NCBI GenBank assembly: GCA_000708835.1 | Contig: DF237245.1 | Coordinates: forward strand, 1-51,468 | Length of the DNA stretch: 51,468 bases | Direction: 5' to 3' | Source of the DNA: Klebsormidium nitens | Lineage: Eukaryota; Plantae; Klebsormidiophyceae | Shown: piece after piece, positions 1,150-27,024 of the stretch | Numbering within the stretch: position 1 is the first letter of the stretch | Layout: each line of letters opens with the position of its first letter | Position numbers and translations under genes: made by a program | The notes under the pieces: generated by a model | Databases searched by the model: none | The model's input: the letters and a program-made list of their open reading frames with translations, nothing else | What the model was told of the DNA's origin: nothing

Positions 1150-4100
1150 ATGGCTTTTGGCGGCTATGGAGTGCAGGGGATGCTTAAGGATGGGCACAAG
1201 CTGCTGTCTGGTTTGGATGAGGCCGTGCTCAAGAACATCGAGGCGTGCAAGCAGCTGTCAAAGATTACAAGGTCATCGCTGGGGCCAAATGGTGCGGTTT
1301 CTTCCGCAACCACCCTGATAAGTTAGCTCTGGAAGCAGATGGGTGCAGATTGAATTTGGATTTACTTCATGCATTGATTTGTAAGAAGTGAATGCAGGTG
1401 GTCTTCGTTAGGTTCAGTGATGAAAAGTTGTGCTGTTTTAGGTGGTCGATAAGTTTCTCATGTTTTTCGCTTTAGGCAGATTGGACGGACCTTGTGCGTT
1501 CACATGTTGCTTTAGCAGACAATCCATGTGGTGCTAGCACCCTTGCAGAATGCACTTTCTAGTTTCAGAATGAAGGTTGCTTTGCTCAAAATGAAGGCTG
1601 CTTAACGGCATCGTTATACTCTTTACGGCATCGTTATACTCTTTACGGAGGTGTATGTGCTCTCAAGATATTCATACAATGGAAGCCGCCACAGGGTTCT
1701 GACCAGCACAGCTTAGCAAAATCCTGTCTCCAAGAATGGACGTTAGATAACGTGAAAGTTTCAATTCATTACTTGGTAAAGGTGGTGTAAGATCTTGCGC
1801 TCTACGCTGCTAGTTCCAAAATTCTTCCAGTAGGTACTTTTTGAGCCATCAAGTGCTTTGAACCACACCGTCTTGCATCAACCAATTGCATCAAAATTCA
1901 ACCCCCACCAAAAAGTCAGCCTGGTCTGGCGTAAGTTCAAACAGGTTATGTGCTGTTCAAAAGACTGTTTGTATTGCAATCAGATGATGCACTGTTAGAC
2001 GAGTGGCCATTCATTCTGTGCCTGTAAAGTTTGGAATCAGGTGGTCCCTGAAGCTTAAGACGTCCAACTCTCTGCAGGCATGAACAAGATGGTGATCAAC
2101 CATCTAGACAAGCTCTTTGTCACTAGCGACGCCGCCACGATTGTGAACGAACTAGAGGTGGCACACCCCGCAGCCAAGCTGCTGGTTTTAGCTGGCAAAG
2201 CGCAGCAAGAGGAAATCGGGGATGGCACAAACCTGGTGGTCACATTAGCAGGAGAGCTGCTCCAAGGAGCAGAGGACCTGATAAGAAGCGGCCTGCACCC
2301 TAGTGAAATCCTGGCTGGGTACAACAAGGCATGCCAAAAAGTGAGGCCACCGCTGTGTTCGCCAATGCGAAAGTCTCATTCCAATCAGGCGATGAGATTC
2401 TTGTTCCGTTCGCGCAGAAATGCATCAAATCTGTGTGTCTCTGTCATCTGATGTCCCATCAAGGCGCCGCTTGTGCCCTGCAGTGGTACCACCTCTAGCT
2501 GTCCGCTGTCTCTCAAAAGCAAGAGGAAAATGTCGAGCTCTAATTGAGGCTTTTGCTACATCAACGGCCCATTGCAGCACTCATGCCTGGTGCTCGTCTG
2601 CTTCTGCAGGTGCTGGAATACCTGGAGGCTCTAGTGGAGCCAGGCTCGGACAAGATTGACGTTCGGAACAAGGATGATGTGGCAAAGCGGATGACTGCGG
2701 CAGTGGCAAGCAAGCAGTATGGCCAGGAGGATATTCTCTGCCCCCTGATAGCCGAGGTGAGGCTACCTTGCCTCTTCTTGTTGTTGCTGTGTGTATGGCA
2801 AATCTGGCTGCCGAGACATAGGACAAATTTCCCCTCCGGCCTATGTGCAACCCCTTGAGCTTAGAACAATCTGATGCTGATGTCGCTTGCCTTTAGTAGC
2901 AGATTGGGATCTGGTTGATGATACAGTGAGAGCTGGCAGGTTTCATAGAAGCTTTCAGAGGAGCCTTGCACCCCGGCGGAGCATAGTGAGTCGATGCAAG
3001 CACATACTCCTCAGAATGCAGAGGCTGTTCACACAAGCGCTTCTTCTCCCCAAGGCATTTGTCGTCTTCCTGATCCCATCCTGGTCCTTTCATAGTGACC
3101 GTACAAGAAAGTGAGAGGAGACTTGAGTGAGCCCTCACTGTCTCCAGGTCCGATCATTGTGAAATCACTCCACAGGCGCTGACTACTTAAGCAAGCTCCC
3201 AACTTCCACCTTATTCTCCCCAGGCCTGTATACAAGTGGCCCCCAAGAACCCGGCCAACTTCAACGTGGACAACGTGCGGGTGGCCAAGATCGTGGGAGG
3301 TTCCATCTACGACAGCAACGTGGTGCAGGGGATGGTGATCAAGCGGGACGCAGAAGGAACCATCAAAAGGGCAGAGAAGGCTAAGGTGACCGTTCTTCGT
3401 CCCTCCCACATTCTTTTTCTTGTGCTGCGCAGTAGAGAATTCGGGTGGACTTTTGATCAACACTTAAGTAGTGGGACGCGGGAAGGAGCCAGTACTTGAG
3501 CAGCTTTCCTCTGTTTGGCGGCTGCTTGGACATAACCGCGACGGAGACGGAGGGCATGAATCCAATCAAAGACTCTTAGCAAGGCACCCTCCAACTTTCG
3601 CAGCCCTGAGTTACATCTACAGTGGGTATGCATACCAGCCTTACCAGGTATTGAGACGCTCACCTGTCACCGCTTCCTCGCAGATCGCCGTCTTTGGCGG
3701 CGGTTTGGATACCTCTGCAACCGAGACGAAGGGCACGGTGCTCATTGAGAGCGCGGCGCAGCTAGAGGGGTACACCAAAAGCGAAGAGGACAAGATGGAG
3801 GCGCTGATCAAGGCGATTGCGGACTCGGGCGCCAAGGTGGTCGTCAGCGGGCAGGCGGTGGGGGAGGTCGCAATGCACTTCTGCGAGCGGTACAAGTGAG
3901 CCGGCCCAAGTATCGTTCGTCAGGTGGCTCGAGTGGCTCCTCGGGCAAGCAATTTGAGGAACTACAGTTGCTTACGCGGTCCAAAATACTGCGTTGCAGA
4001 TGCCGTGCACTTCTGCGAGCAGTAGAAGTGCGATTGCGCCAAGGACTTTTGGCGTTGATTTATCTGACTCCTTTTGCGTTCGGTTTCAAGCAAAAAATTC

Positions 4101-7100
4101 TGCTGTGACGATTGAGATAGTTTCACGAATACTCCATGCGCCTTAGCGAGCGTTTCAAGTGAGCAGGCCAGGAATTTGTTACCTGAGCTGTAGTGTGGCA
4201 GACCACAGGGCTCCGTTCGTTTCCAACAGGCGCCCTGCATTGTCTTACACTCGTTGTGCGGACCGTTTCGGAGAGTCTGATTCGTTTGCGACAAAATGTT
4301 CCGACTGCTGTTTTAAGTAGGATTTGGTTTGCCCTAAATTGTCAAGAAGGGTGCACAAACCCTCCAAACGCGAGTGGGGCGAAGAGGATGGGGCATAGAC
4401 TGCCCGTACAAACAAAAGCAGGTGTAGGCCGCGGATGCTTTTGAAGTTGTCAGTGCAGTGAGTATGTAGTTTTGAATCTGTCTTTTCCCCCTGCAGGCTT
4501 ATGGTCCTGAAGATCCTATCCAAGTTCGAGCTGCGTAGATTCTGCAGAGCCACAAACTCGACGTCATTGGTGAGAGCATCTTCCTTGATTGCTTGCCAAA
4601 GCAAACAGATTGATACCGACAAACGTATGATTGAAGTCGCAGTTGCAAAGGTTGCCGAGTGATGCGTTGAGTCCGCTCTCTTTTGCTGGAGCTCTTGCAA
4701 GTCCTGTGTCTTGGTCTCTCTTCCTTCTCATTGCCAGAGCCAAAGGACGGAGAACGTAAACCTCCGTTGTCAAGTCAAGTCCTGGCGCCCCTTGGCTGGA
4801 ATCCCTTCTATGAAAGGCCGGAAGGTACCCTCGTGACTCGTTCCACCATTGACGAAAGGGGTGCTCACCAAGGCGGGGTCAAATCGGCGATGCTAGTCCA
4901 CGTCACTGCTCGCAAGGCCCGGCTGATTGGCTGAGCTCGCTTGGGCTGTCCTGTCACTTGAAGCTTATTTGCGCTGGGCTTTTCGTGCGCAGGTGCAAGT
5001 GGGCAAGCCCGAGGCTGACGAGCTTGGTTACGCTGACATTGTAGAGGCGCAGGAAATCGGGGGGCAACGGGTGAGCTCTCTGCTCGAGGATTCGCATTGT
5101 TCGACTGTAGAAAGGGGCTCAGAGCTGGTACAAAATGGACTTTGTTCTAGTTTCGTGCATGCTGTTTGCAGTGATCCGTCGTAAGCTGTATTCTACGTTC
5201 AGGACATGATTTGCACTCATTTTGTGCTGCCATTCGAAATTGTTTTCCGAATGGTAGTTGTGCTTGGAAGCGGGGTCTGTTCATGAGCTTTTGGACGCTT
5301 TCCCTCTTCTTTTCAAATCCTGGAGCCCGAATCTGGAGAAGTCGAATTTTCCAATTGTGCTAACTCACGCATATTGATACGTCTATTCTATGCATTTTTT
5401 GCTCGTGACGCCTTCCAACCTGAGGTGACTTCGTTCGCCATTGCTACCGTCAACACAGATTCAGATTCAACGACTGTGTTTTCCCCAGCAAATTGACACT
5501 GAATTCTTAACAAGGTTTCGAATTTAAGTACAACATCTGTGTCCGTCAGGTAACAATCGTGAGGAACGAGACTGGCGGCAACCACATCGCCACCGTGGTG
5601 GTCCGAGCTAGTACAGACAACATCGCTGATGACATCGAACGGGCCATCGAGGACGGTGTGAATGCCTACAAGGTGAGGGGCCTCTCTCATTGTTGCCATC
5701 TCTACTTATCATTCCCTTCCTTTGTTGCTCTCGTTTATCCTCCCTTTTTGGCTGCTTCCTGGTTATATTGAGTCAAATGAGCAGTCTAGTTTTTGTGTAT
5801 TTTGAAGCGTGTAAGCATATGTATTGAGGCGGCTCCGAGTAACGGCACAAATTGTCGACTTCCATTGGCTCGAGCTCCCTTCTAAACTGGAAGAGACTTT
5901 CTTTCTCTTCGCTGATTGAAAGACCCGTTTATAGGTGCGCTGGCAAAAAAAGTATTTTTGTGTTTTCACTTCGCTTCGTGGGTTAGCGCCCACCCAAGCT
6001 TGAACCCAGCTGCGGATTCCCCCATGCATCCCCGGACGACGAAAGGAAGTCCATAGAAATCTTTATGGAAACTGGCCTGTGACGGTCGGATTGGAAGTCT
6101 GACGAAAGAATAATACCTCATGCTCGCAGGCGATGGGCAAGGACCCGCGCTTGGTTGCCGGCGCGGGCGCCACCGAGATAGAGCTCGCCAAGAGGCTGAG
6201 GGAGTATGGCAGGAAGGAAACCGGGTGAGCGAGCAGCTCCGCCTTACCTGCCTTTATGCGTTCTTCTGCTGTTGTCCTTGCCTTGTATTCTTGCCCGGTT
6301 ATCCTTGAGTCTGGTCACTAGGACAGTCTTTCCGGATGGTCCAATCACCAGGACATACTTCGTGTTTTCTCTGGTCAACTTTGCAATTCTCTACTGTTTG
6401 GGATTCTGCCAGACCAGATGATTCTGTTTGGTGTAGCGGTCGTGACATTTGTGTGCAGAGACCATGACAGCAATCAAGCCTATGCTATGGCGGCCTTGGT
6501 TCCGGTGAACATCTTCCTGCAATCGTAAATATCCAGAGTGTTGAATCCACTTGCGATGCCATTGAATCTCAATTGGCCTTTCCAGCAAGCTTCCCTGTGC
6601 CAGACAGGAGACCAGCTCACGGCAGGACTGTTTTGTTTCTGCCATCTCAATCAATGCTGTATCCATCGCCGTTTGCCCAGGCTGGACCAATACGCTATCC
6701 ACAAGTTCGCGGACAGCCTGGAGGTGGTCCCCCGGACGCTGTCCGAGAACGCGGGCCTCAACGCGACGGACATCATCAGCGGTCTGTACGCTGCTCACGC
6801 GCGTGGGGAGCACAAGGCCGGGATCAACGTCGACGAGGGGACCATCCAGGATCTGACGACAAAGAGCGTCTGGGACCTGTACGCAACAAAGTGAGGTTCT
6901 GGTCGGGACGCGCGCGAGAATCTTTGGGCACTGAGTTTTTTCGACAGGCTCTGCTTTACCCGTTCCATTGCAACTTCCACGTGTTTCATTTTTGTGATGG
7001 CGATTCTGGTGCTGGACGAAGAGAAACTTAAGTACGACGGCTAAGTGCGGCCTTTACTTTGTGGCAACTCTCTTCGCGACAGAGAGAGTTTGGTGAAGTA

Positions 7101-19962: not shown

Positions 19963-20351
19963 GCGCGCGCGCGGCCGCTCGCGCTTGAAGCTCCTGCTCG
20001 CAGTATCGCAGGCTCCATCATGGCATCTGCTTAGGCGCTCGATGAGTTGTTTGTCAAATCGAGCGAAGGTCACAGGTGGCCGCATCTTTTTGCGCATGGC
20101 GGCCTTGACGGTGGGTTCGAACGCGCGCAAACCTGGAAAGCTAGTTACAGAGTCTCTCCTCCTTCCAGAATTATCACGAAGAGCTTCTTGTTTTGCCCCT
20201 TACTGTCTCCTCCTCAGAAACCACTCCCCAACCCACATTTGCGGATCAGCAGGGTCGTTGCGTGCTTCGAGAAACACAGAAGGCAGAGAAGGTCTGCGAA
20301 TCTTTTGAGCAATAGGGATCGCTTTACGTCGCCGTTGTTGCCAAGGCAGAT

Positions 20352-23300
20352 ATGGCAAATGCCAACGAGCCGCCCGGTGGCTATGCGGAGATCGCGAACC
20401 CCCCCCAAAACACCGTGGTCAAGATTCCGCGGCTAGGTTTTGGCACTTATCAGATTCCGCCTGGATATGAGACGGAACAGGCGGTTTCCGCTGCCCTGAA
20501 GGTTGGCTACCGCCACATTGATACAGCGGCGGTCTACCAGAATGAAGAGTCTGTGGGTATGTGCCTCTCTCCTAGGGAGCTATCTCTTGCGCGCACTCCC
20601 TCAATCTTCGTGTGCTTTTTTTCCTTTGCTTGCAAAAAGGATCTTGGACCCAACCGCCAATGAATACCTGTGCGAAGAGCTTTTCCCCTGAGCAGCTAGT
20701 TCCCTCGTTTTATAAGAAACTGCTGAAAGTGGCGACTCGCAGATGGATAAGATTCAAACACAATGGGTGTCGCATGCGGAATCTGCTTGCAGCGCTTCTT
20801 CTGTGCTCCGATCCCTTGCATTTTAGCTTGGCTGACGACTTGAATGCATGCAAAGATTCTATCCTAGATGCGGCTTCTATCCGCGAAAGATATGGAGGCA
20901 GGAGCCCTTACAGAATAGCAAATGGGGCAATGTATGCTTACGTACTATCTCCATGCGGATCATCTTCGAGCTGCAGCCGTTGAAAAGGTCTTCTCATATT
21001 TGCCAGTCAAGACATTTCAATCAGAATGTGTCAGAATGCGAAAATGCTCTTTGGATGTAACCTCATGTACAGCAGTTGCTGTTTGCTCCATCGAGAGTGG
21101 TTGACCGCACAAGATTCATCTGACTGAGTTGATCGACCAGAATTTTTAAAAAAGAAACAGAACCCGCAGGATTACCAATTGAAGAGGCGCAGCTCTCTCA
21201 TTGGTTCTGTATCGACGAACTTTGTCGTTCGATTCGGGTGCGCGATCCAAGGCAGTTGAGGTAAAAAGCACCCATCTTCAGTGTCCCAAAACCGAACAAC
21301 CTATTCGTCGACCGATACCCATCAGCGTCTACTTTCGATTCAGGTGCGGCGATCAAGAAGAGCGGGCTTCCCCGTGAGGAAATCTTCGTGACGACCAAGC
21401 TGTGTAACAGCGACCCCGGCTTTAATTTGTCAAACCAAACAATCTGCATGATGTTTTTCTGCTTCATAATCATCCAACAGTGACTACGGCTTGGACTCAG
21501 GTGCGGCGATCAAGAAGAGCGGGCTTCCCCGCGAGGAGCTCTTCGTGACAACCAAGCTGTGGAACAGCGACCACGGCTTCGAGCGTACGCTGCACGCCTT
21601 TGGGCGGAGCCTGCACAAGCTGGAACTCGACTACGGTAAGAGATGTGCGCCCAAACGTGTGTTGCTTGTCCCGAAAGAGAGTGGAGGATCTGTATTCTAC
21701 TTCGTAAGTTTTTGAGGCTGCCGTTTTTTCTTCATTTCCGCAATGGCAAACATTCTGATTTAGGAGACTTGGATTAAACGAGGGTGTATTTGCTTTCACG
21801 TCTACTTTTCTACCCGCAGTCCCTTTGAACTCAATTTTATGGTTCGTGGCGTTCTCTTGGGTTTACTATAACCGCCTTTCGTCCACTTGGCTGCAATCAA
21901 TTGATCCCGTCAGAAGTGGCTCAGAACGGGGTCTTGGGTCCTTGCGATTTGAGTTCTGATCGAACGGTGTGGAGCCGTCATCAGCTGGTTGCCAATTTTT
22001 ATCGTGATGTTTAAACGCTCTTTAATGATGACCTCGCCTGGTCCCTAAAGATTCTGCAGGACGTTCTTGTTGGTACCCGCTTATGAATCTTTTGAGCCGT
22101 AATTCGGCCCGTTCAACGCAGCCGATGTGTATTAGATCTACCCCTCGCATGCCCCCGCACTTACGACGAGACGTCGTCAGCGTAACTTCGTCCACAATTT
22201 GCTCTTGACTTTCCAACTAAAACCGATTTCCGCAGTTCAGGTAGCGGGATTAGGACCTTGTTGTTACCATCCCTTAACCCGCAGTTGCTCTGTACCTCGT
22301 GCACACGCCCGGCAGCCCGCGCACGCGCCAAGACGTGGCGCGCGCGTTTCAGCTTTCTTCCCATAACCTTTGAAGACAACCTCTAACTAAACAGTTTTCC
22401 GCTCCCTTCTGGTGGCGCAAAGCAACCTCGATTTCCGTAACCCGCAGTCGACCTGTACCTGGTCCACGCGCCCGGCAGCCCGCGCACGCGCGACGAGACG
22501 TGGCGCGCGATGGAGTCCATCCTGGAGGCCGGCAAGGCACGCGCGGTGGGCGTGAGCAATTTCGGCGTGAAGCACCTGGAGCACCTCCTCAAAATCTGCA
22601 ACTACCGCCCCGCCGTCAACCAGGTCCGGACACGTGTGGCTCGTCTGACGTCCGATTTGTCGCCGCCGTTTTTGGAATGTTACCGAGCTTTGCGGATAGT
22701 CTTCGACTACCGCCCCGCTGACAACCAGGTCCGAAATCATTTTGCTTGTCGGACGTCCGAATTCTCCCCCCTTTTTTCGTTGGAAGTAACTCAGCTTTTT
22801 CTGGGGACAGTCTTCAAGTATCGCCCCGCCGACAGAAAAGTTTGAAACGAGACCCTTCTGGAAGATTATGTACGGCTTTGACGGTTTGCAGCTAGATGAT
22901 GAAAGAGTAAGTACCATCGACCGTCCCCCACCGGCCCGCCGCCCTGTTTAAAACATCCAAGCTTTCAAAGCTTTGGCCCGGCTTTCAGCGCGTGCATCTC
23001 ATTTGCCGTGGATGCAAGTGCCTTGTTTCCGGCCTTCACTTAGTCCGCCGGAACGCCTCGCAACCTCTAAAGCGGCACGCAGTTTGGGGGTCACGTTTCC
23101 TCCGTGTTGTCGTCGTTGTTTGTTGCAAGAAACTGCTCTCAGAACTGCCCAAACACCTCGTCTGCAAGGACCGCCAACGCTCAGGGTCCCTCTCCTTCTC
23201 ACGGTTCAAAAATGCGCGCGCGCAGATCGAGCTGCACCCGTACAACCAGCGCAAGGACATCGTGGGCTACTGCCGCGAGAACGGCATCGCGCTCGAGGCA

Positions 23301-25419
23301 TATGCCCCGCTCACGCGCGGCCGCAAGCTCAACGACCCGCCGCTCGTCGAGGTGAGGCCGAAGCCATGAGGATTTTGAAACAGGAAGTTTAACGAGCGTA
23401 AAATTACCCCCAGCCTGGGACGGGATCTTGGATTATTTTGGGGGTTTAGGGAGGGTAAGGGGCAGAGGTAGTTTTTACGAGTTGGGATGGGTTGAGCGAA
23501 GTACTCGAGAAGCTTGCTATTCTTAAAGTGTGGCGACATGTGAGCCGGTATCTTCTGCCGGATGCCCATTTATGTAACATGTTGATTTGAAAGACGCGAT
23601 TTCTCAAAAGACCAAAAGACGCTCTCGTCCTGCTTCTATTGTAGGTGAGTTTACGGAAGGGTTGGTCTGCATTGGACTTGAAATTAGGAAGTATTGAGGC
23701 GGCTTCGTTCGTTGGTGGCCGGCCGAAACTCGGACGGTTTGCTTCTCCCTGCCCGACACATTCTGGTAGCATAAGATGAATTAAAACATGGGCGCACATT
23801 CTTCTCACGAGGTCATCGAAACCTTCTACCCATGTCTTTGCTTCAAACGGCGGGTGCTTTCCAAGTATGAGATTTTAACACCTTTTCGAACCAACATCAA
23901 TCGTAGCCCGGACTACACGTGTAACTCTTTACGCCTGCTCCGCCAGAATGCCAAGGGACTTTGCGAGGCGGCGGCGGCGCAGGTCCTGATTCCGCTAATT
24001 TCGCTGTTCCGTCAACTTCTTCGTTTTGGATCCTCCGCCGGGATGGCAAGCAGTGCCGAAATGAAATGAAATGAAATGTTTACCTGCTGTTTCCGGTCTT
24101 CTGTCTCTCTTCTGATTTCGGTCCTTCCTCATTTCGTCGAACAGTACCGCAACGAAATCTAGCCGCCCAGATGCGAATTTCACTTATTCCGCCGTTCTGT
24201 TCATATATGAAATTCGCTTGTCACCGCCAGATCGCCAAGAAGTACCACAAGGCGACGGCGCAGATCCTGATCCGCTGGGGGCTCCAGAAGGGCTTCATCG
24301 TCATCGCCAAGTCGACCAACCGCGAGCGTATGAAGATGAACCTAGAGGCGAGTTTATCCCAGCTACCTGTTCTGTGAAACTTGCAGTTTTCTCTTCTCGT
24401 ATTTTCGGGTTTGAGAAGCTTCATGGTCGACCAGCGCATGAGATAACCCCTGAAATTCCTGAGCGAGTGTTTGACCGACACGCGTCCTGTCCAGATACGC
24501 TCCTTTCTTGCCTTTAACCCCCCGACAATCGTTTGATCATCCGCTTTTGAGCTGTTTCAGCTATAATGCAATGGTGGACAAGGGATCCATCGATTTGCGT
24601 GCATCTGCGTTTTGTGGCTGCCCTTCGCTATGAAGAAGGTCGTGCAAGGATTTAGGTAACACGGATAGCGAAGAAACTGCCTTCTGCGGTTCAGTCAAGA
24701 CACGATCTTCGAAAACCCGGAAGAGACGCTTCGAGTCTTTGCGAGCAGAAGTACAAGCTAGAAACAATCGGCCTGATATCTGGGCGGAGGTTTGGAGTAG
24801 ACGCAGGAATTGGTTACTTTGACCGCAAATCCAAAAACGGACATTATTGATTCTGCTCTGATGAATGATCGTTCAGCATTCAGAGCTCGTAAAAACATTG
24901 ATCTGATGATCAGGGATATGCCTGGAAGAACAACTTGAAGCCGCTTCCAATTATCGTAGGAGTCGAGTAGCGAAGCTGTTGCTGGCGTAGAAAAAAGATG
25001 TCAAAGGTCTCTTTGAACCGTATCCACAACGGATGAGCTCAAGCGAAGCGCCATGCTTAGGCGGGTCGAACTTAAGTCCCGGTGTCTAGTCCACCCCCCT
25101 TTTGGGTGAGTGGTTCAGTCGGTCGGTACAAATTAGTGATTGGTTTTGTGCCAGTATGTTCAAAATTACAGGGTGTTTTTGGGGCAAAACCCAAGATTTT
25201 GGCCCGGACTCGGAGAAAAGCCGTTACGAATTCCCGGATCGGATCAAGGTCCATCCTTTTCTCGGACACCTTATCTGGTCATGAAACTTTGGAACCAGCC
25301 TCAAGGGCTTTCCTCTTCAGGTCACCGACTTTGAGATCGGTCCCGACGACATGGCGAAGCTCGATGCGCTGGACGAGAAACTCGTCACCGACATCTGGGA
25401 TCCGACGGCGGAGCCGTGA
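20352..25419 (+). CDS. Aldo-keto reductase (AKR5/2,5-diketogluconate-glyoxal reductase-like), 6 exons, 285 aa using terminal exon 6a
   Basis: join(20352-20556,21501-21635,22448-22623,23226-23351,24231-24347,25321-25419) = 858 nt. Catalytic tetrad present: [11 protein letters not shown] (Asp, Tyr), FVTTKLW (Lys), DLYLVHAP (His). Also GVSNF, PAVNQIELHP, AQILIRW, IAKS. Intron 5 begins with GC (AG/GCGAGT). Confidence 0.95.
21228..21423 (+). repeat. Two decayed upstream copies of the AKR exon-2 acceptor and exon start
   Basis: Copy at 21344-21423 (CAG kept) reads [26 protein letters not shown] then diverges, with no donor. An older copy at 21228-21252 has CGG instead of CAG. Confidence 0.85.
22114..22346 (+). 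repeat. Two decayed upstream copies of the AKR exon-3 acceptor and exon start, period 163 nt
   Basis: Acceptor CAGs end at 22121, 22284 and 22447 (functional). The copy at 22285 reads (V)[14 protein letters not shown] then shifts frame. The copy at 22122 is more diverged. Confidence 0.85.
22595..22841 (+). repeat. Tandem array of the AKR exon-3 3' end, donor and intron start (three units, about 105-111 nt)
   Basis: actaccgccccgccgtcaaccag/gtccgg (donor 22624), actaccgccccgctgacaaccag/gtccga (22729), agtatcgccccgccgacagaaaa/gtttga (22840). The intronic parts (gtc.gacgtccga...ttgga...agcttt) are also homologous. Confidence 0.85.
23938..23996 (+). repeat. Decayed upstream copy of the AKR exon-5 acceptor and exon start
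   Basis: ccgccag/aatgccaag...ggcggcgcaggtcctgattccgct versus ccgccag/atcgccaag...gacggcgcagatcctgatccgct at 24224-24276. Confidence 0.7.
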
Positions 25420-25533
25420 CGACAAGGCGGCGATGTGGATTGCCACCTCTTCAGGCCACGTGGACGCTATAGCAACAGGCTTGCCACAGAGTCTTCGGGG
25501 AAGTCTTAGGAACACGTTTAGTTTTCCGTTCAG

Positions 25534-25629
25534 GTAACCAACTTTGAGATCGCACCGGAAGACATGGAGGCTCTCGACTCGCTGGACGAAGGGCTCGTCA
25601 CCGACTGGGATCCGACCAAGGATCCATAG
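25534..25629 (+). CDS. AKR alternative terminal exon 6b: VTNFEIAPEDMEALDSLDEGLVTDWDPTKDP*
   Basis: Pyrimidine tract plus CAG acceptor ending 25533, phase 0 like exon 6a, open to TAG, clearly paralogous to 25321-25419. Confidence 0.85.
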   Translation, partial: VTNFEIAPEDMEALDSLDEGLVTDWDPTKDP

Positions 25630-25745
25630 GCTATTAGCCCATACGCGGCTAGATTTGGCGAGTCTCAGATACGTTGACGTAACCCTATGTAGATGGTTAA
25701 CCAGATGAGCTTGTGTGTTCTTAAGAAGGTTAGCGTTTCTTTCAG

Positions 25746-25883
25746 GTCACAAACTTTGAGCTGAGGCCGGAGGACATGGAGAAGCTGGACTCGCTGGACG
25801 AGGGGCTGGCGACCACCTGGGACCCAGAGAGAGGAGTGAGACCGAGCCGGGCAATCTGTGGTCGCCGGGCAGTTTTAGATTAG
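25746..25883 (+). CDS. AKR alternative terminal exon 6c: VTNFELRPEDMEKLDSLDEGLATTWDPERGVRPSRAICGRRAVLD*
   Basis: TTTCTTTCAG acceptor ending 25745, phase 0, open frame. Paralogous to 6a/6b for 27 codons, then a divergent extended tail. Confidence 0.75.
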   Translation, partial: VTNFELRPEDMEKLDSLDEGLATTWDPERGVRPSRAICGRRAVLD

Positions 25884-27024
25884 GCAGCCTTGGCCGCTGA
25901 CCCAGGAGTTTTGGGTCTTCACTTTGGATGTACTTTATCCTGTGAAAAGAATGAAAAATTGAATGAAGAACAACTCACGGAGTCGCCGTGCTGAAAAGCC
26001 CGGGCCCGTGATTTGTCGCCAATTGCAACTTAGAAAAGGCCGCGACAGATCAGATTCATGCGTCGCAAATTTGTGCACCTAGCATTTTTCAATATGACAT
26101 TTGTATTTTCGGTTCAAGGCTATAGCGATACCTGATTGGATCACTTCTTATAAGGTGCCTTGGAATGAAATTTATTTGGGGTAATCATTGCCTACATCCC
26201 CATATCCTCGTTCACGATGTGCGGGACATACAGTATCATACCATTCCTTGTCACCGTTCATTTTACCGGCGCCCGATCGTGACATAGCACATGGGTACGA
26301 AATGCAGTGGTGCCGGCCGGCGGCAAATACATGCATGCTTGATTCAGCTCTCGAGCAATACATACGATCCATGATACGAACGTGCAACAGCTCATGCAGA
26401 TTCAATTTTGCTCTTCGGTCCTAGTTGGTGGGAAGTCGTAGAATGATCGATACTGGTCGATCGAGCTTCTACCAAGGCCGCGGGCGGCGAGCGCAGCTTC
26501 GCATGTAAACAGTAAAGCTCAGCGACTGATCGTCGATCGCGTGTGCAATGAGGACGGCATGGCATGAGAACACTTGTGCTTGACGTTAGTCGCGCACATG
26601 TATATAGGGTCATGCTCGTATATGCATGATACATCTTACACGAGGCGCAAACTGAGTGCAGTACTTCTCTTAAGCAAGGTTGTGTATTCATGCAGGCAGT
26701 ACGAACCTGAAGAATTGCAGCTAGCTGATGCCAGCATTTGACTGAGCTACACAAGCTTTGACACAAGTTTTCTTTTACCGAAGTCTCACATTGAACTAGC
26801 GCATGATCTCTAGGTCAGCTTGTTCTGGCGATTCCGGGACTCACGCATGTCATCAGATGCCGCACGCTTCTCGATGACGCTCAAGTAGTAGCGTTCTGCT
26901 TCGATCTTTTCTTCCTATCACCCGTGTCACACAGATCTTCGATCTGGCCATCTAGTATCTATTTGCAGCTGTATTTCACCACTTCGATGATCGGTTCATA
27001 CTTATTGTGTATGGAGATTTCTGG

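Follow-up and report, generated by a model that had tools for sequence, protein, structure and literature searches.

The window analyzed here, a stretch of 51,468 nt from Klebsormidium nitens contig DF237245.1, carries on its plus strand, from 20352 to ~25900, an aldo-keto reductase (AKR) gene with six exons and a YvgN-like product. The last coding exon of this gene is present in three tandem copies, named 6a, 6b, and 6c, and comparative sequence evidence makes it probable that they stem from an old triplication of the terminal coding exon and have been kept as alternative protein ends, with a choice among 3′ acceptors yielding two to three AKR isoforms. Exons 1 to 5 encode a 253-residue core shared by all predicted isoforms, and the spliced isoforms of the predicted enzyme are 285 amino acids (aa) long. 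Two orthologous loci, both reached via read-through open reading frames (ORFs) over exon 1, were compared with K. nitens: L001, a Logan contig with a synonymous distance (dS) of 0.34 over exons 1 to 5, and L006, an ENA contig with a dS of 0.585 over the same exons.

The three last exons, like all features described below, lie on the plus strand, and each begins in phase 0 and possesses its own pyrimidine tract, CAG acceptor, and stop codon. Exon 6a (25321-25419, stop TGA) follows a tract and acceptor at 25298-25320; exon 6b, VTNFEIAPEDMEALDSLDEGLVTDWDPTKDP (25534-25629, stop TAG), follows those at 25511-25533; and exon 6c (25746-25883, stop TAG), which consists of a 27-codon core, VTNFELRPEDMEKLDSLDEGLATTWDP, and a frameshifted tail, follows those at 25723-25745. 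They were recovered as one repeat family (D1) of three in-register copies (25298-25400, 25511-25613, and 25723-25825) that are spaced 213 and 212 nt apart and are 65 to 75% identical. Sequence, repeat search, and translation therefore all agreed with the arrangement described in a first-pass annotation of this DNA. Within the 27-codon core, the extra ATC (Ile) in 6a is the sole indel, and differences between the K. nitens copies fell at third codon positions in 8 of 16, 12 of 20, and 12 of 22 cases, in keeping with the single indel and the many third-position changes that the annotation had noted. It had also called all three exons intact, which holds for 6a and 6b but not for 6c, where 2 nt were lost in K. 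nitens, such that the ancestral TGA (25837-25839) is out of frame and a new 16-aa tail is read; the relatives end in WDPTKHE (L001) and WDPTKGE (L006) before the stop. The suggestion that the 6c tail might serve localization is weakened, since this tail is the product of a K. nitens-specific frameshift.

In-register identity between the copies was ~75% over a segment that starts ~20 nt ahead of each acceptor and reaches roughly to the stop, and 20 to 25%, the random level, in the spacers, which are only 88 to 140 nt long. Smith-Waterman scores for the paralogous spacers were no different from those of shuffled sequences in each species. By eye, no TGTAA-type signal was seen in the two K. nitens spacers, and TGTAA was present after 6b and 6c of L001 and after 6c of L006 only. 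In the spacer after 6b, a block of 22 nt from the 6b stop (TAGGCTATTAGCCCATACGCGG, 25627-25648) is identical to L001:6928-6949 at 21 of 22 positions, the rest of that spacer being ~65% identical, and it is not conserved in L006.

Conservation, selection, and origin of the three copies

Both orthologous loci carry all three copies in unchanged order, with 6a at L001:6651-6748 and L006:4920-5018, 6b at L001:6835-6930 and L006:5137-5232, and 6c at L001:7052-7147 and L006:5375-5470. The period of the copies differs among the species, being 213/212 nt in K. nitens, 184/217 nt in L001, and 217/238 nt in L006. In L006, all three copies are intact and end in AEP, KDP, and KGE, respectively, and the 6b orthologues are intact in both L001 and L006. 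The copies are thus neighboring homologous exons of the same phase and similar length with their own 3′ splice sites, and a YAG/G acceptor (the slash marking the splice junction) was found in nine of the nine copies in the three species. The acceptors of 6a and 6c are present in L001 and L006, and the tract and acceptor of 6b are 80% identical to those of L001 over positions −20 to −1.

We then estimated the ratio of nonsynonymous to synonymous change (dN/dS) for each copy, with P values expressing the excess of synonymous changes over the neutral expectation. Compared with L006, the dN/dS values of 6a, 6b, and 6c were 0.08 (P = 0.0001), 0.13 (P = 0.0003), and 0.14 (P = 0.002), and that of exons 1 to 5 was 0.11; in this deeper comparison, where the dS of the copies is ~0.6 to 1.0, the dN/dS of each copy resembles that of the constitutive exons. 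Compared with L001, dN/dS was 0.14 for exons 1 to 5, 0.09 for 6a (5 synonymous to 2 nonsynonymous changes), 0.06 for 6b (4 to 1), and 0.71 to 0.83 for 6c, varying with the codons compared. Constraint is therefore seen for all copies against L006 and for 6a and 6b against L001, while 6c gave no such signal against L001. A neutral 6c, as the value of 0.83 against L001 alone would have it, was considered and dropped, since L006 and the polarization of changes place the relaxation in L001 only.

A model-free count of variable sites pointed the same way. The numbers at codon positions 1, 2, and 3 were 4, 0, and 16 for 6a (n = 20), 5, 3, and 13 for 6b (n = 21), and 3, 6, and 14 for 6c (n = 23), and the third-position excess was significant for each copy, with a pooled P of 3e-8. 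The view of the first-pass annotation that these exons look selected is thus largely borne out by this excess and by the dN/dS of 0.08 to 0.14 against L006. When changes were polarized with L006, the K. nitens lineage had altered 1, 1, and 3 sites in the cores of 6a, 6b, and 6c (3/81 for 6c), versus 28/759 in the constitutive exons, such that the rate in the cores is equal to or below that of the constitutive exons.

The sequences surrounding the copies behaved differently from the copies themselves. Between K. nitens and L006, the spacers and the upstream intron are unalignable (z ~0, like shuffled sequences), and the copies are still 79 to 83% identical. Between K. nitens and L001, identity was 93% for 6a, 95% for 6b, and 86% for 6c, comparable values being 90% for exon 2 and 93% for exon 3, versus 52 to 79% for the spacers and 69% and 83.5% for the two truncated decoy junctions of this gene that were compared. 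The GC content at third codon positions (GC3) of the copies was 0.68 to 0.89, that of the constitutive exons 0.85, and the GC content of the spacers 0.46 to 0.57. Together these data argue strongly for translation of every copy, in the frame proposed here, over most of its past, and they would otherwise be hard to explain.

The origin of the trio was examined using a K. nitens paralogue, P0235 (L007:6001-9502, contig DF237204.1), which encodes 273 aa and has a single last exon with no extra copies nearby. Its relatives, the outgroup L003 and the cDNA L005, likewise have one last exon, which is closest to 6b, and 6b is the copy most like the single last exon of the paralogue, with an identity to the outgroup of 0.74 to 0.78. 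A metagenome scan with the conserved last-exon core pattern yielded one contig, namely L005, a spliced paralogue cDNA from a metatranscriptome. The P0235 product is 81% identical to that of L005, and tblastn shows an ATG at L007:5974, 10 residues ahead of where the annotated P0235 appears to begin. In a tree of the 81-nt cores, all copies of the trio were set apart from the paralogue with 97% support, and the a-type and c-type copies formed clades with 89% and 87% support, respectively. Given this grouping, and since the trio is found in all three species and the paralogue has a single last exon, the triplication took place after the gene duplication and before the split of the three species.

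Each type has also kept residues of its own across species: Gly7, Lys20, the extra Ile before WDP, and the AEP end in 6a; the KDP end in 6b; and Leu6, a basic residue at position 7, and LAT-T in 6c. This conservation suggests that the isoforms are not simply redundant but differ to some degree, and it fits a modest functional differentiation among them. A patchy similarity was observed for 6b. In both K. nitens and L001, this copy has the look of a mosaic, since Asn3 and Glu12 in its 5′ part are shared with 6c and its 3′ part (codons 21 to 27) is identical to that of 6a; the 5′ part of the L006 6b has Asp3 and Ala12, as in 6a and the paralogue. At least one gene conversion or unequal crossover between neighboring copies is likely to have occurred after the L006 split.

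Predicted choice among three acceptors and its alternatives

The three last exons have exon 5 (24231-24347) in common as their upstream partner; it ends in NLE, and its end position is alike in L001, L006, and the paralogue cDNA (NLQ/VTDFEI). A GC-type donor of the last intron, GCGAGT, follows at 24348-24353, and GAG/GCGAGT is identical in L001. By homology, we took 24347/24348 to be the true donor of the last intron, because the donor positions of L001, L006, and the paralogue support it and the junctions of the paralogue are directly visible in its spliced cDNA L005; the exon 5/exon 6 junction also fits a gap-free alignment to YvgN. As to the donor dinucleotide, it is GC in K. nitens and L001 (L001:6098-6103) and GT elsewhere, the homologous position reading GAG/GTGACC in L006 (4352-4357) and CAG/GTAAGC in the paralogue clade and outgroup (L003, ~15018).

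We propose that this weak GC-type donor would join one of the three acceptors, located 973, 1186, or 1398 nt downstream. The chosen copy would supply the last ~31 residues, that is, the end of the barrel, the last helix, and a short C-terminal tail, together with the stop codon, whereas copies downstream of the chosen acceptor would become 3′ untranslated region (UTR) and those upstream would leave with the intron. Each copy would then be translated in a share of the transcripts and so come under purifying selection. Formally, if the copies share one 3′ end, this is a choice of 3′ splice site inside one terminal region, and such a choice appears likelier than independent last exons, given spacers of 88 to 140 nt and the lack of evident separate poly(A) signals. 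Use of all three acceptors, the manner of the choice, and a difference in substrate handling or stability are what the sequence leads us to infer. For present-day K. nitens, 6a and 6b are the safest candidates for use, and 6c is probably still used, with an altered tail.

Several observations weigh against the proposed choice of protein ends. The sample per copy is small (27 to 32 codons). No separate poly(A) signals for the copies were evident in the short spacers, and an inverted-repeat search for selector or docking RNA structures in all three species revealed nothing conserved. None of 24 same-species sequencing runs surveyed contained the stretch 20300-26000, and four of these runs, examined over 20250-26100, gave 0 contigs, even on constitutive exons, and are uninformative about usage. 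The L001 copy of 6a has a 1-nt deletion at codon 21 that shifts the frame, a contig error being possible, and 6c is relaxed in the L001 lineage, with 5 nonsynonymous versus 1 synonymous changes; this frameshift and this relaxation may mean that some copies are dispensable. The shifted end of 6c in K. nitens is likewise a lineage-specific lesion. Moreover, the b-type copies are not monophyletic in the core tree, and the patchy similarity, with the conversion that it suggests, implies that the copies are not fully independent.

These lesions raise the alternative of a collapsing cassette, in which all three copies were used in an ancestor and present K. nitens splices only one of them (6a as annotated, or the ancestral-like 6b), the others being undecayed relics. 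In its favor, each of the two closest species has one frameshifted copy (the 6c tail in K. nitens and 6a in L001), the dN/dS of the L001 6c against K. nitens is 0.71 to 0.83, and apparent expression is weak, the runs having returned 0 contigs. However, the K. nitens cores have changed at only 1, 1, and 3 sites, versus the ~12 per copy expected from half the synonymous distance, and thus give no sign of decay. Furthermore, the 38 nt downstream of the deletion in the L001 6a are identical to K. nitens, indicating that this lesion is either very recent or a contig or assembly error. We therefore regard a collapse of this kind as unlikely.

Alternatively, the copies could function at the RNA level only, tuning the splicing or mRNA stability of a single isoform, whether in the role of decoy acceptors or in that of 3′ UTR elements. 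The weak GC donor, the retention of nine of nine acceptors, and the near-identity between K. nitens and L001 of the ~22-nt block just after the 6b stop would agree with such a function, but neither a three-base periodicity confined to a single frame nor the placing of in-frame stops at one and the same codon within each type would be expected of an RNA element. In addition, the acceptor tracts are 55 to 80% conserved versus 86 to 95% for the coding cores, and no conserved pairing partners were found, which makes this explanation very improbable.

Gene model, enzyme family, and junction echoes

Upstream of exon 5, the gene comprises exon 1 (20352-20556, with the start codon at 20352; orthologues L001:1181-1385 and L006:1495-1699), which matches the annotated product P0151, exon 2 (21501-21635; L001:2691-2825), exon 3 (22448-22623), whose junction RPAVNQ/IELHP is backed by homology to the spliced paralogue cDNA L005, and exon 4 (23226-23351; L001:4859-4984). 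P0151, found via the exon 1 search, is entered as "aldo/keto reductase family protein [Klebsormidium nitens]" with 327 aa, and its sequence matches the modelled exons. It contains the domain PF00248 (Aldo_ket_red; 162.6 bits, E 1.4e-47, cut-off 24), and its best solved relative is Bacillus subtilis YvgN (3D3F; E 4e-73). The catalytic tetrad of Asp, Tyr, Lys, and His could be aligned to YvgN (SIDTAAIY, TSKVW, and LYLIHWP in YvgN, the last matched by LYLVHAP in the AKR), and these residues lie within exons 1 to 3, common to all isoforms. In the same alignment, exon 6 corresponds to the stretch from the conserved FDFEL motif onward, through the last helix, to a short C-terminal tail; its counterpart in YvgN-type enzymes is IFDFELSQEDMDKIDALNK together with the C-terminal tail. 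In AKRs, the substrate pocket is shaped in part by the C-terminal segment, and an effect of the predicted end swap on substrate specificity is plausible. The first-pass annotation had spoken of swapping the C-terminal loop; a C-terminal segment is indeed encoded, but the YvgN alignment identifies it as the last helix and a short tail, not as a long AKR1-type loop C.

P0151 ends in 6a and departs from the present model in two places. A first insert of 35 aa (VRTRVARL...DYRPADNQ; 22624-22728 of the window) results from reading on into the first of the donor echoes that follow exon 3, and it makes one YvgN strand align twice. The second, of 7 aa (ASLSQLP; 24348-24368), comes from a GT donor at 24369, 21 nt past the GC donor; this GT donor is not conserved, and the insert falls in a YvgN gap. 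Both inserts are missing from the paralogue cDNA and are probably annotation artifacts of junction echoes and of GT-only donor prediction. The public gene model is therefore likely wrong in two places, and it hides two of the three ends. A protein search found no transcript-derived protein for this gene, the matches being P0151 and genomic read-through ORFs.

The junction echoes just mentioned are partial copies of splice junctions, of which this gene has four families, affecting exon 2 and both ends of exon 3. A truncated decoy in intron 1, comprising the acceptor and start of exon 2 (21334-21422; family D2), is 91% identical to the real exon start and 83.5% identical to its L001 copy, and it has no counterpart in L006. 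At 21227-21260, ~105 nt upstream of this decoy, lies a further copy of the exon 2 acceptor (ttcgattcGGGTGCGCGATCCAAGGCAG), which is older and more strongly degraded; the array at exon 2 thus comprises at least two decoys. In intron 2, a truncated decoy of the exon 3 acceptor and exon start (22272-22346; family D4) is 81% identical to the real exon and 69% identical to its L001 copy; L001 has three such copies and L006 none. Intron 3 contains two decaying copies of the exon 3 end and donor (22700-22834, as 22700-22777 and 22811-22834; families D3 and D5). The echoes of L001, located at 2224-2767, 3456-3951, 4018-4579, and 5837-5995, comprise two to three decoys of exon 2, three of exon 3, several donor echoes, and one echo at the exon 5 acceptor, whereas L006:1400-5700 revealed no junction echoes apart from the last-exon trio. 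The echo process thus seems to have been active in the K. nitens/L001 lineage but, for this gene, not in L006. The statement in the first-pass annotation that the other duplicated junctions are partial copies was confirmed, in that all of these are truncated, with a different number in L001 and none in L006.

The echoes and the trio have in common that both are head-to-tail local copies of an acceptor and an exon start. It could accordingly be argued that the trio consists of dead junction echoes that look complete simply because the duplication unit exceeds the last exon in length, that were never used, and whose similarity was kept up by gene conversion. The trio period of 212 to 217 nt does lie within the range of the echo arrays, the AKR gene holds four other echo families, and there are hints of conversion between neighboring copies. 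Conversion, however, cannot yield a third-position excess, nor a dN/dS of ~0.1 between orthologous copies that bear their own type-specific residues. Nor do the histories match, because the trio was retained and the remaining echoes of the gene, all truncated, occur in varying numbers and do not appear in L006; as controls, the decoys are 69% and 83.5% identical to L001, versus 93 to 95% for 6a and 6b. Taken together, dN/dS, the third-position excess, the decay of the spacers, GC3, and the turnover of echoes led us to reject this null explanation, to which we attach hardly any probability.

A different relation between the two is more tentative than the retention of alternative ends, but possible: the trio may be an exapted junction echo, in which a local duplication copied the whole of the short last exon, the new acceptors came into use, and selection fixed a three-way C-terminal swap. 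The geometry of the trio fits echo duplication, and its age and constraint are unlike those of the echoes as described, which are truncated and turn over between species, whereas the copies of the trio are complete, in frame, constrained at the protein level, and present in three species. If true, junction echoing would be a source of new coding alternative exons and not of intron growth alone, and the isoforms would differ in substrate range or stability. The locus offers a natural contrast between ignored and apparently used duplicated acceptors, and with it a test of whether junction duplication creates coding exons.

Comparison with known alternative terminal exons

Few kinds of alternative splicing have a clear functional value, and the swapping of tandem-duplicated homologous exons is one of them; to our knowledge, animals provide nearly all of the documented cases. 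Were a conserved terminal cassette of three copies at work in a streptophyte alga, near the land-plant lineage, the mechanism would reach the green lineage as well, and with it a simple enzyme in which the C-terminal segment is a recognized specificity element. Our literature search found no account of this AKR locus, of alternative last exons in AKRs, or of junction duplication in Klebsormidium, nor any solved or described AKR with alternative C-terminal exons. The YvgN and 2,5-diketo-D-gluconate reductase-type AKRs (PDB 3D3F, 3F7J, and 1A80) share PF00248 and the tetrad with the Klebsormidium gene; the bacterial YvgN-type enzymes, however, are encoded in a single exon and have one C terminus, whereas the Klebsormidium gene has three candidate ends.

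On the sequence features described above, we file the trio under a known kind, the tandem-duplicated alternative terminal exons. The tandem duplication of exons as a source of alternative homologous exons, with mutually exclusive terminal ones among them (Drosophila pipe and the 3′ variable regions of PGRP-LC), is well described in animals and has been reviewed (PMC9013439), and substitutions of tandem duplicated exons have been described in human (PMC9741552 and PMC8373072). RNA evidence backs the known cases, which are animal genes, whereas the trio belongs to a streptophyte alga and was recognized in genomic sequence. PGRP-LC relies on a mechanism of competing RNA structures, whereas no selector structure was found for the AKR trio, and its copies, 88 to 140 nt apart and probably served by one 3′ UTR and poly(A) site, are in this respect unlike the known animal cases. 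What the trio shares with the animal tandem-duplicated alternative exons is a set of head-to-tail homologous copies of the same phase and near-equal length, each with its own acceptor and each under purifying selection across species. The isoforms of the known systems are identical but for one homologous segment, and the same would be expected for those of the AKR trio.

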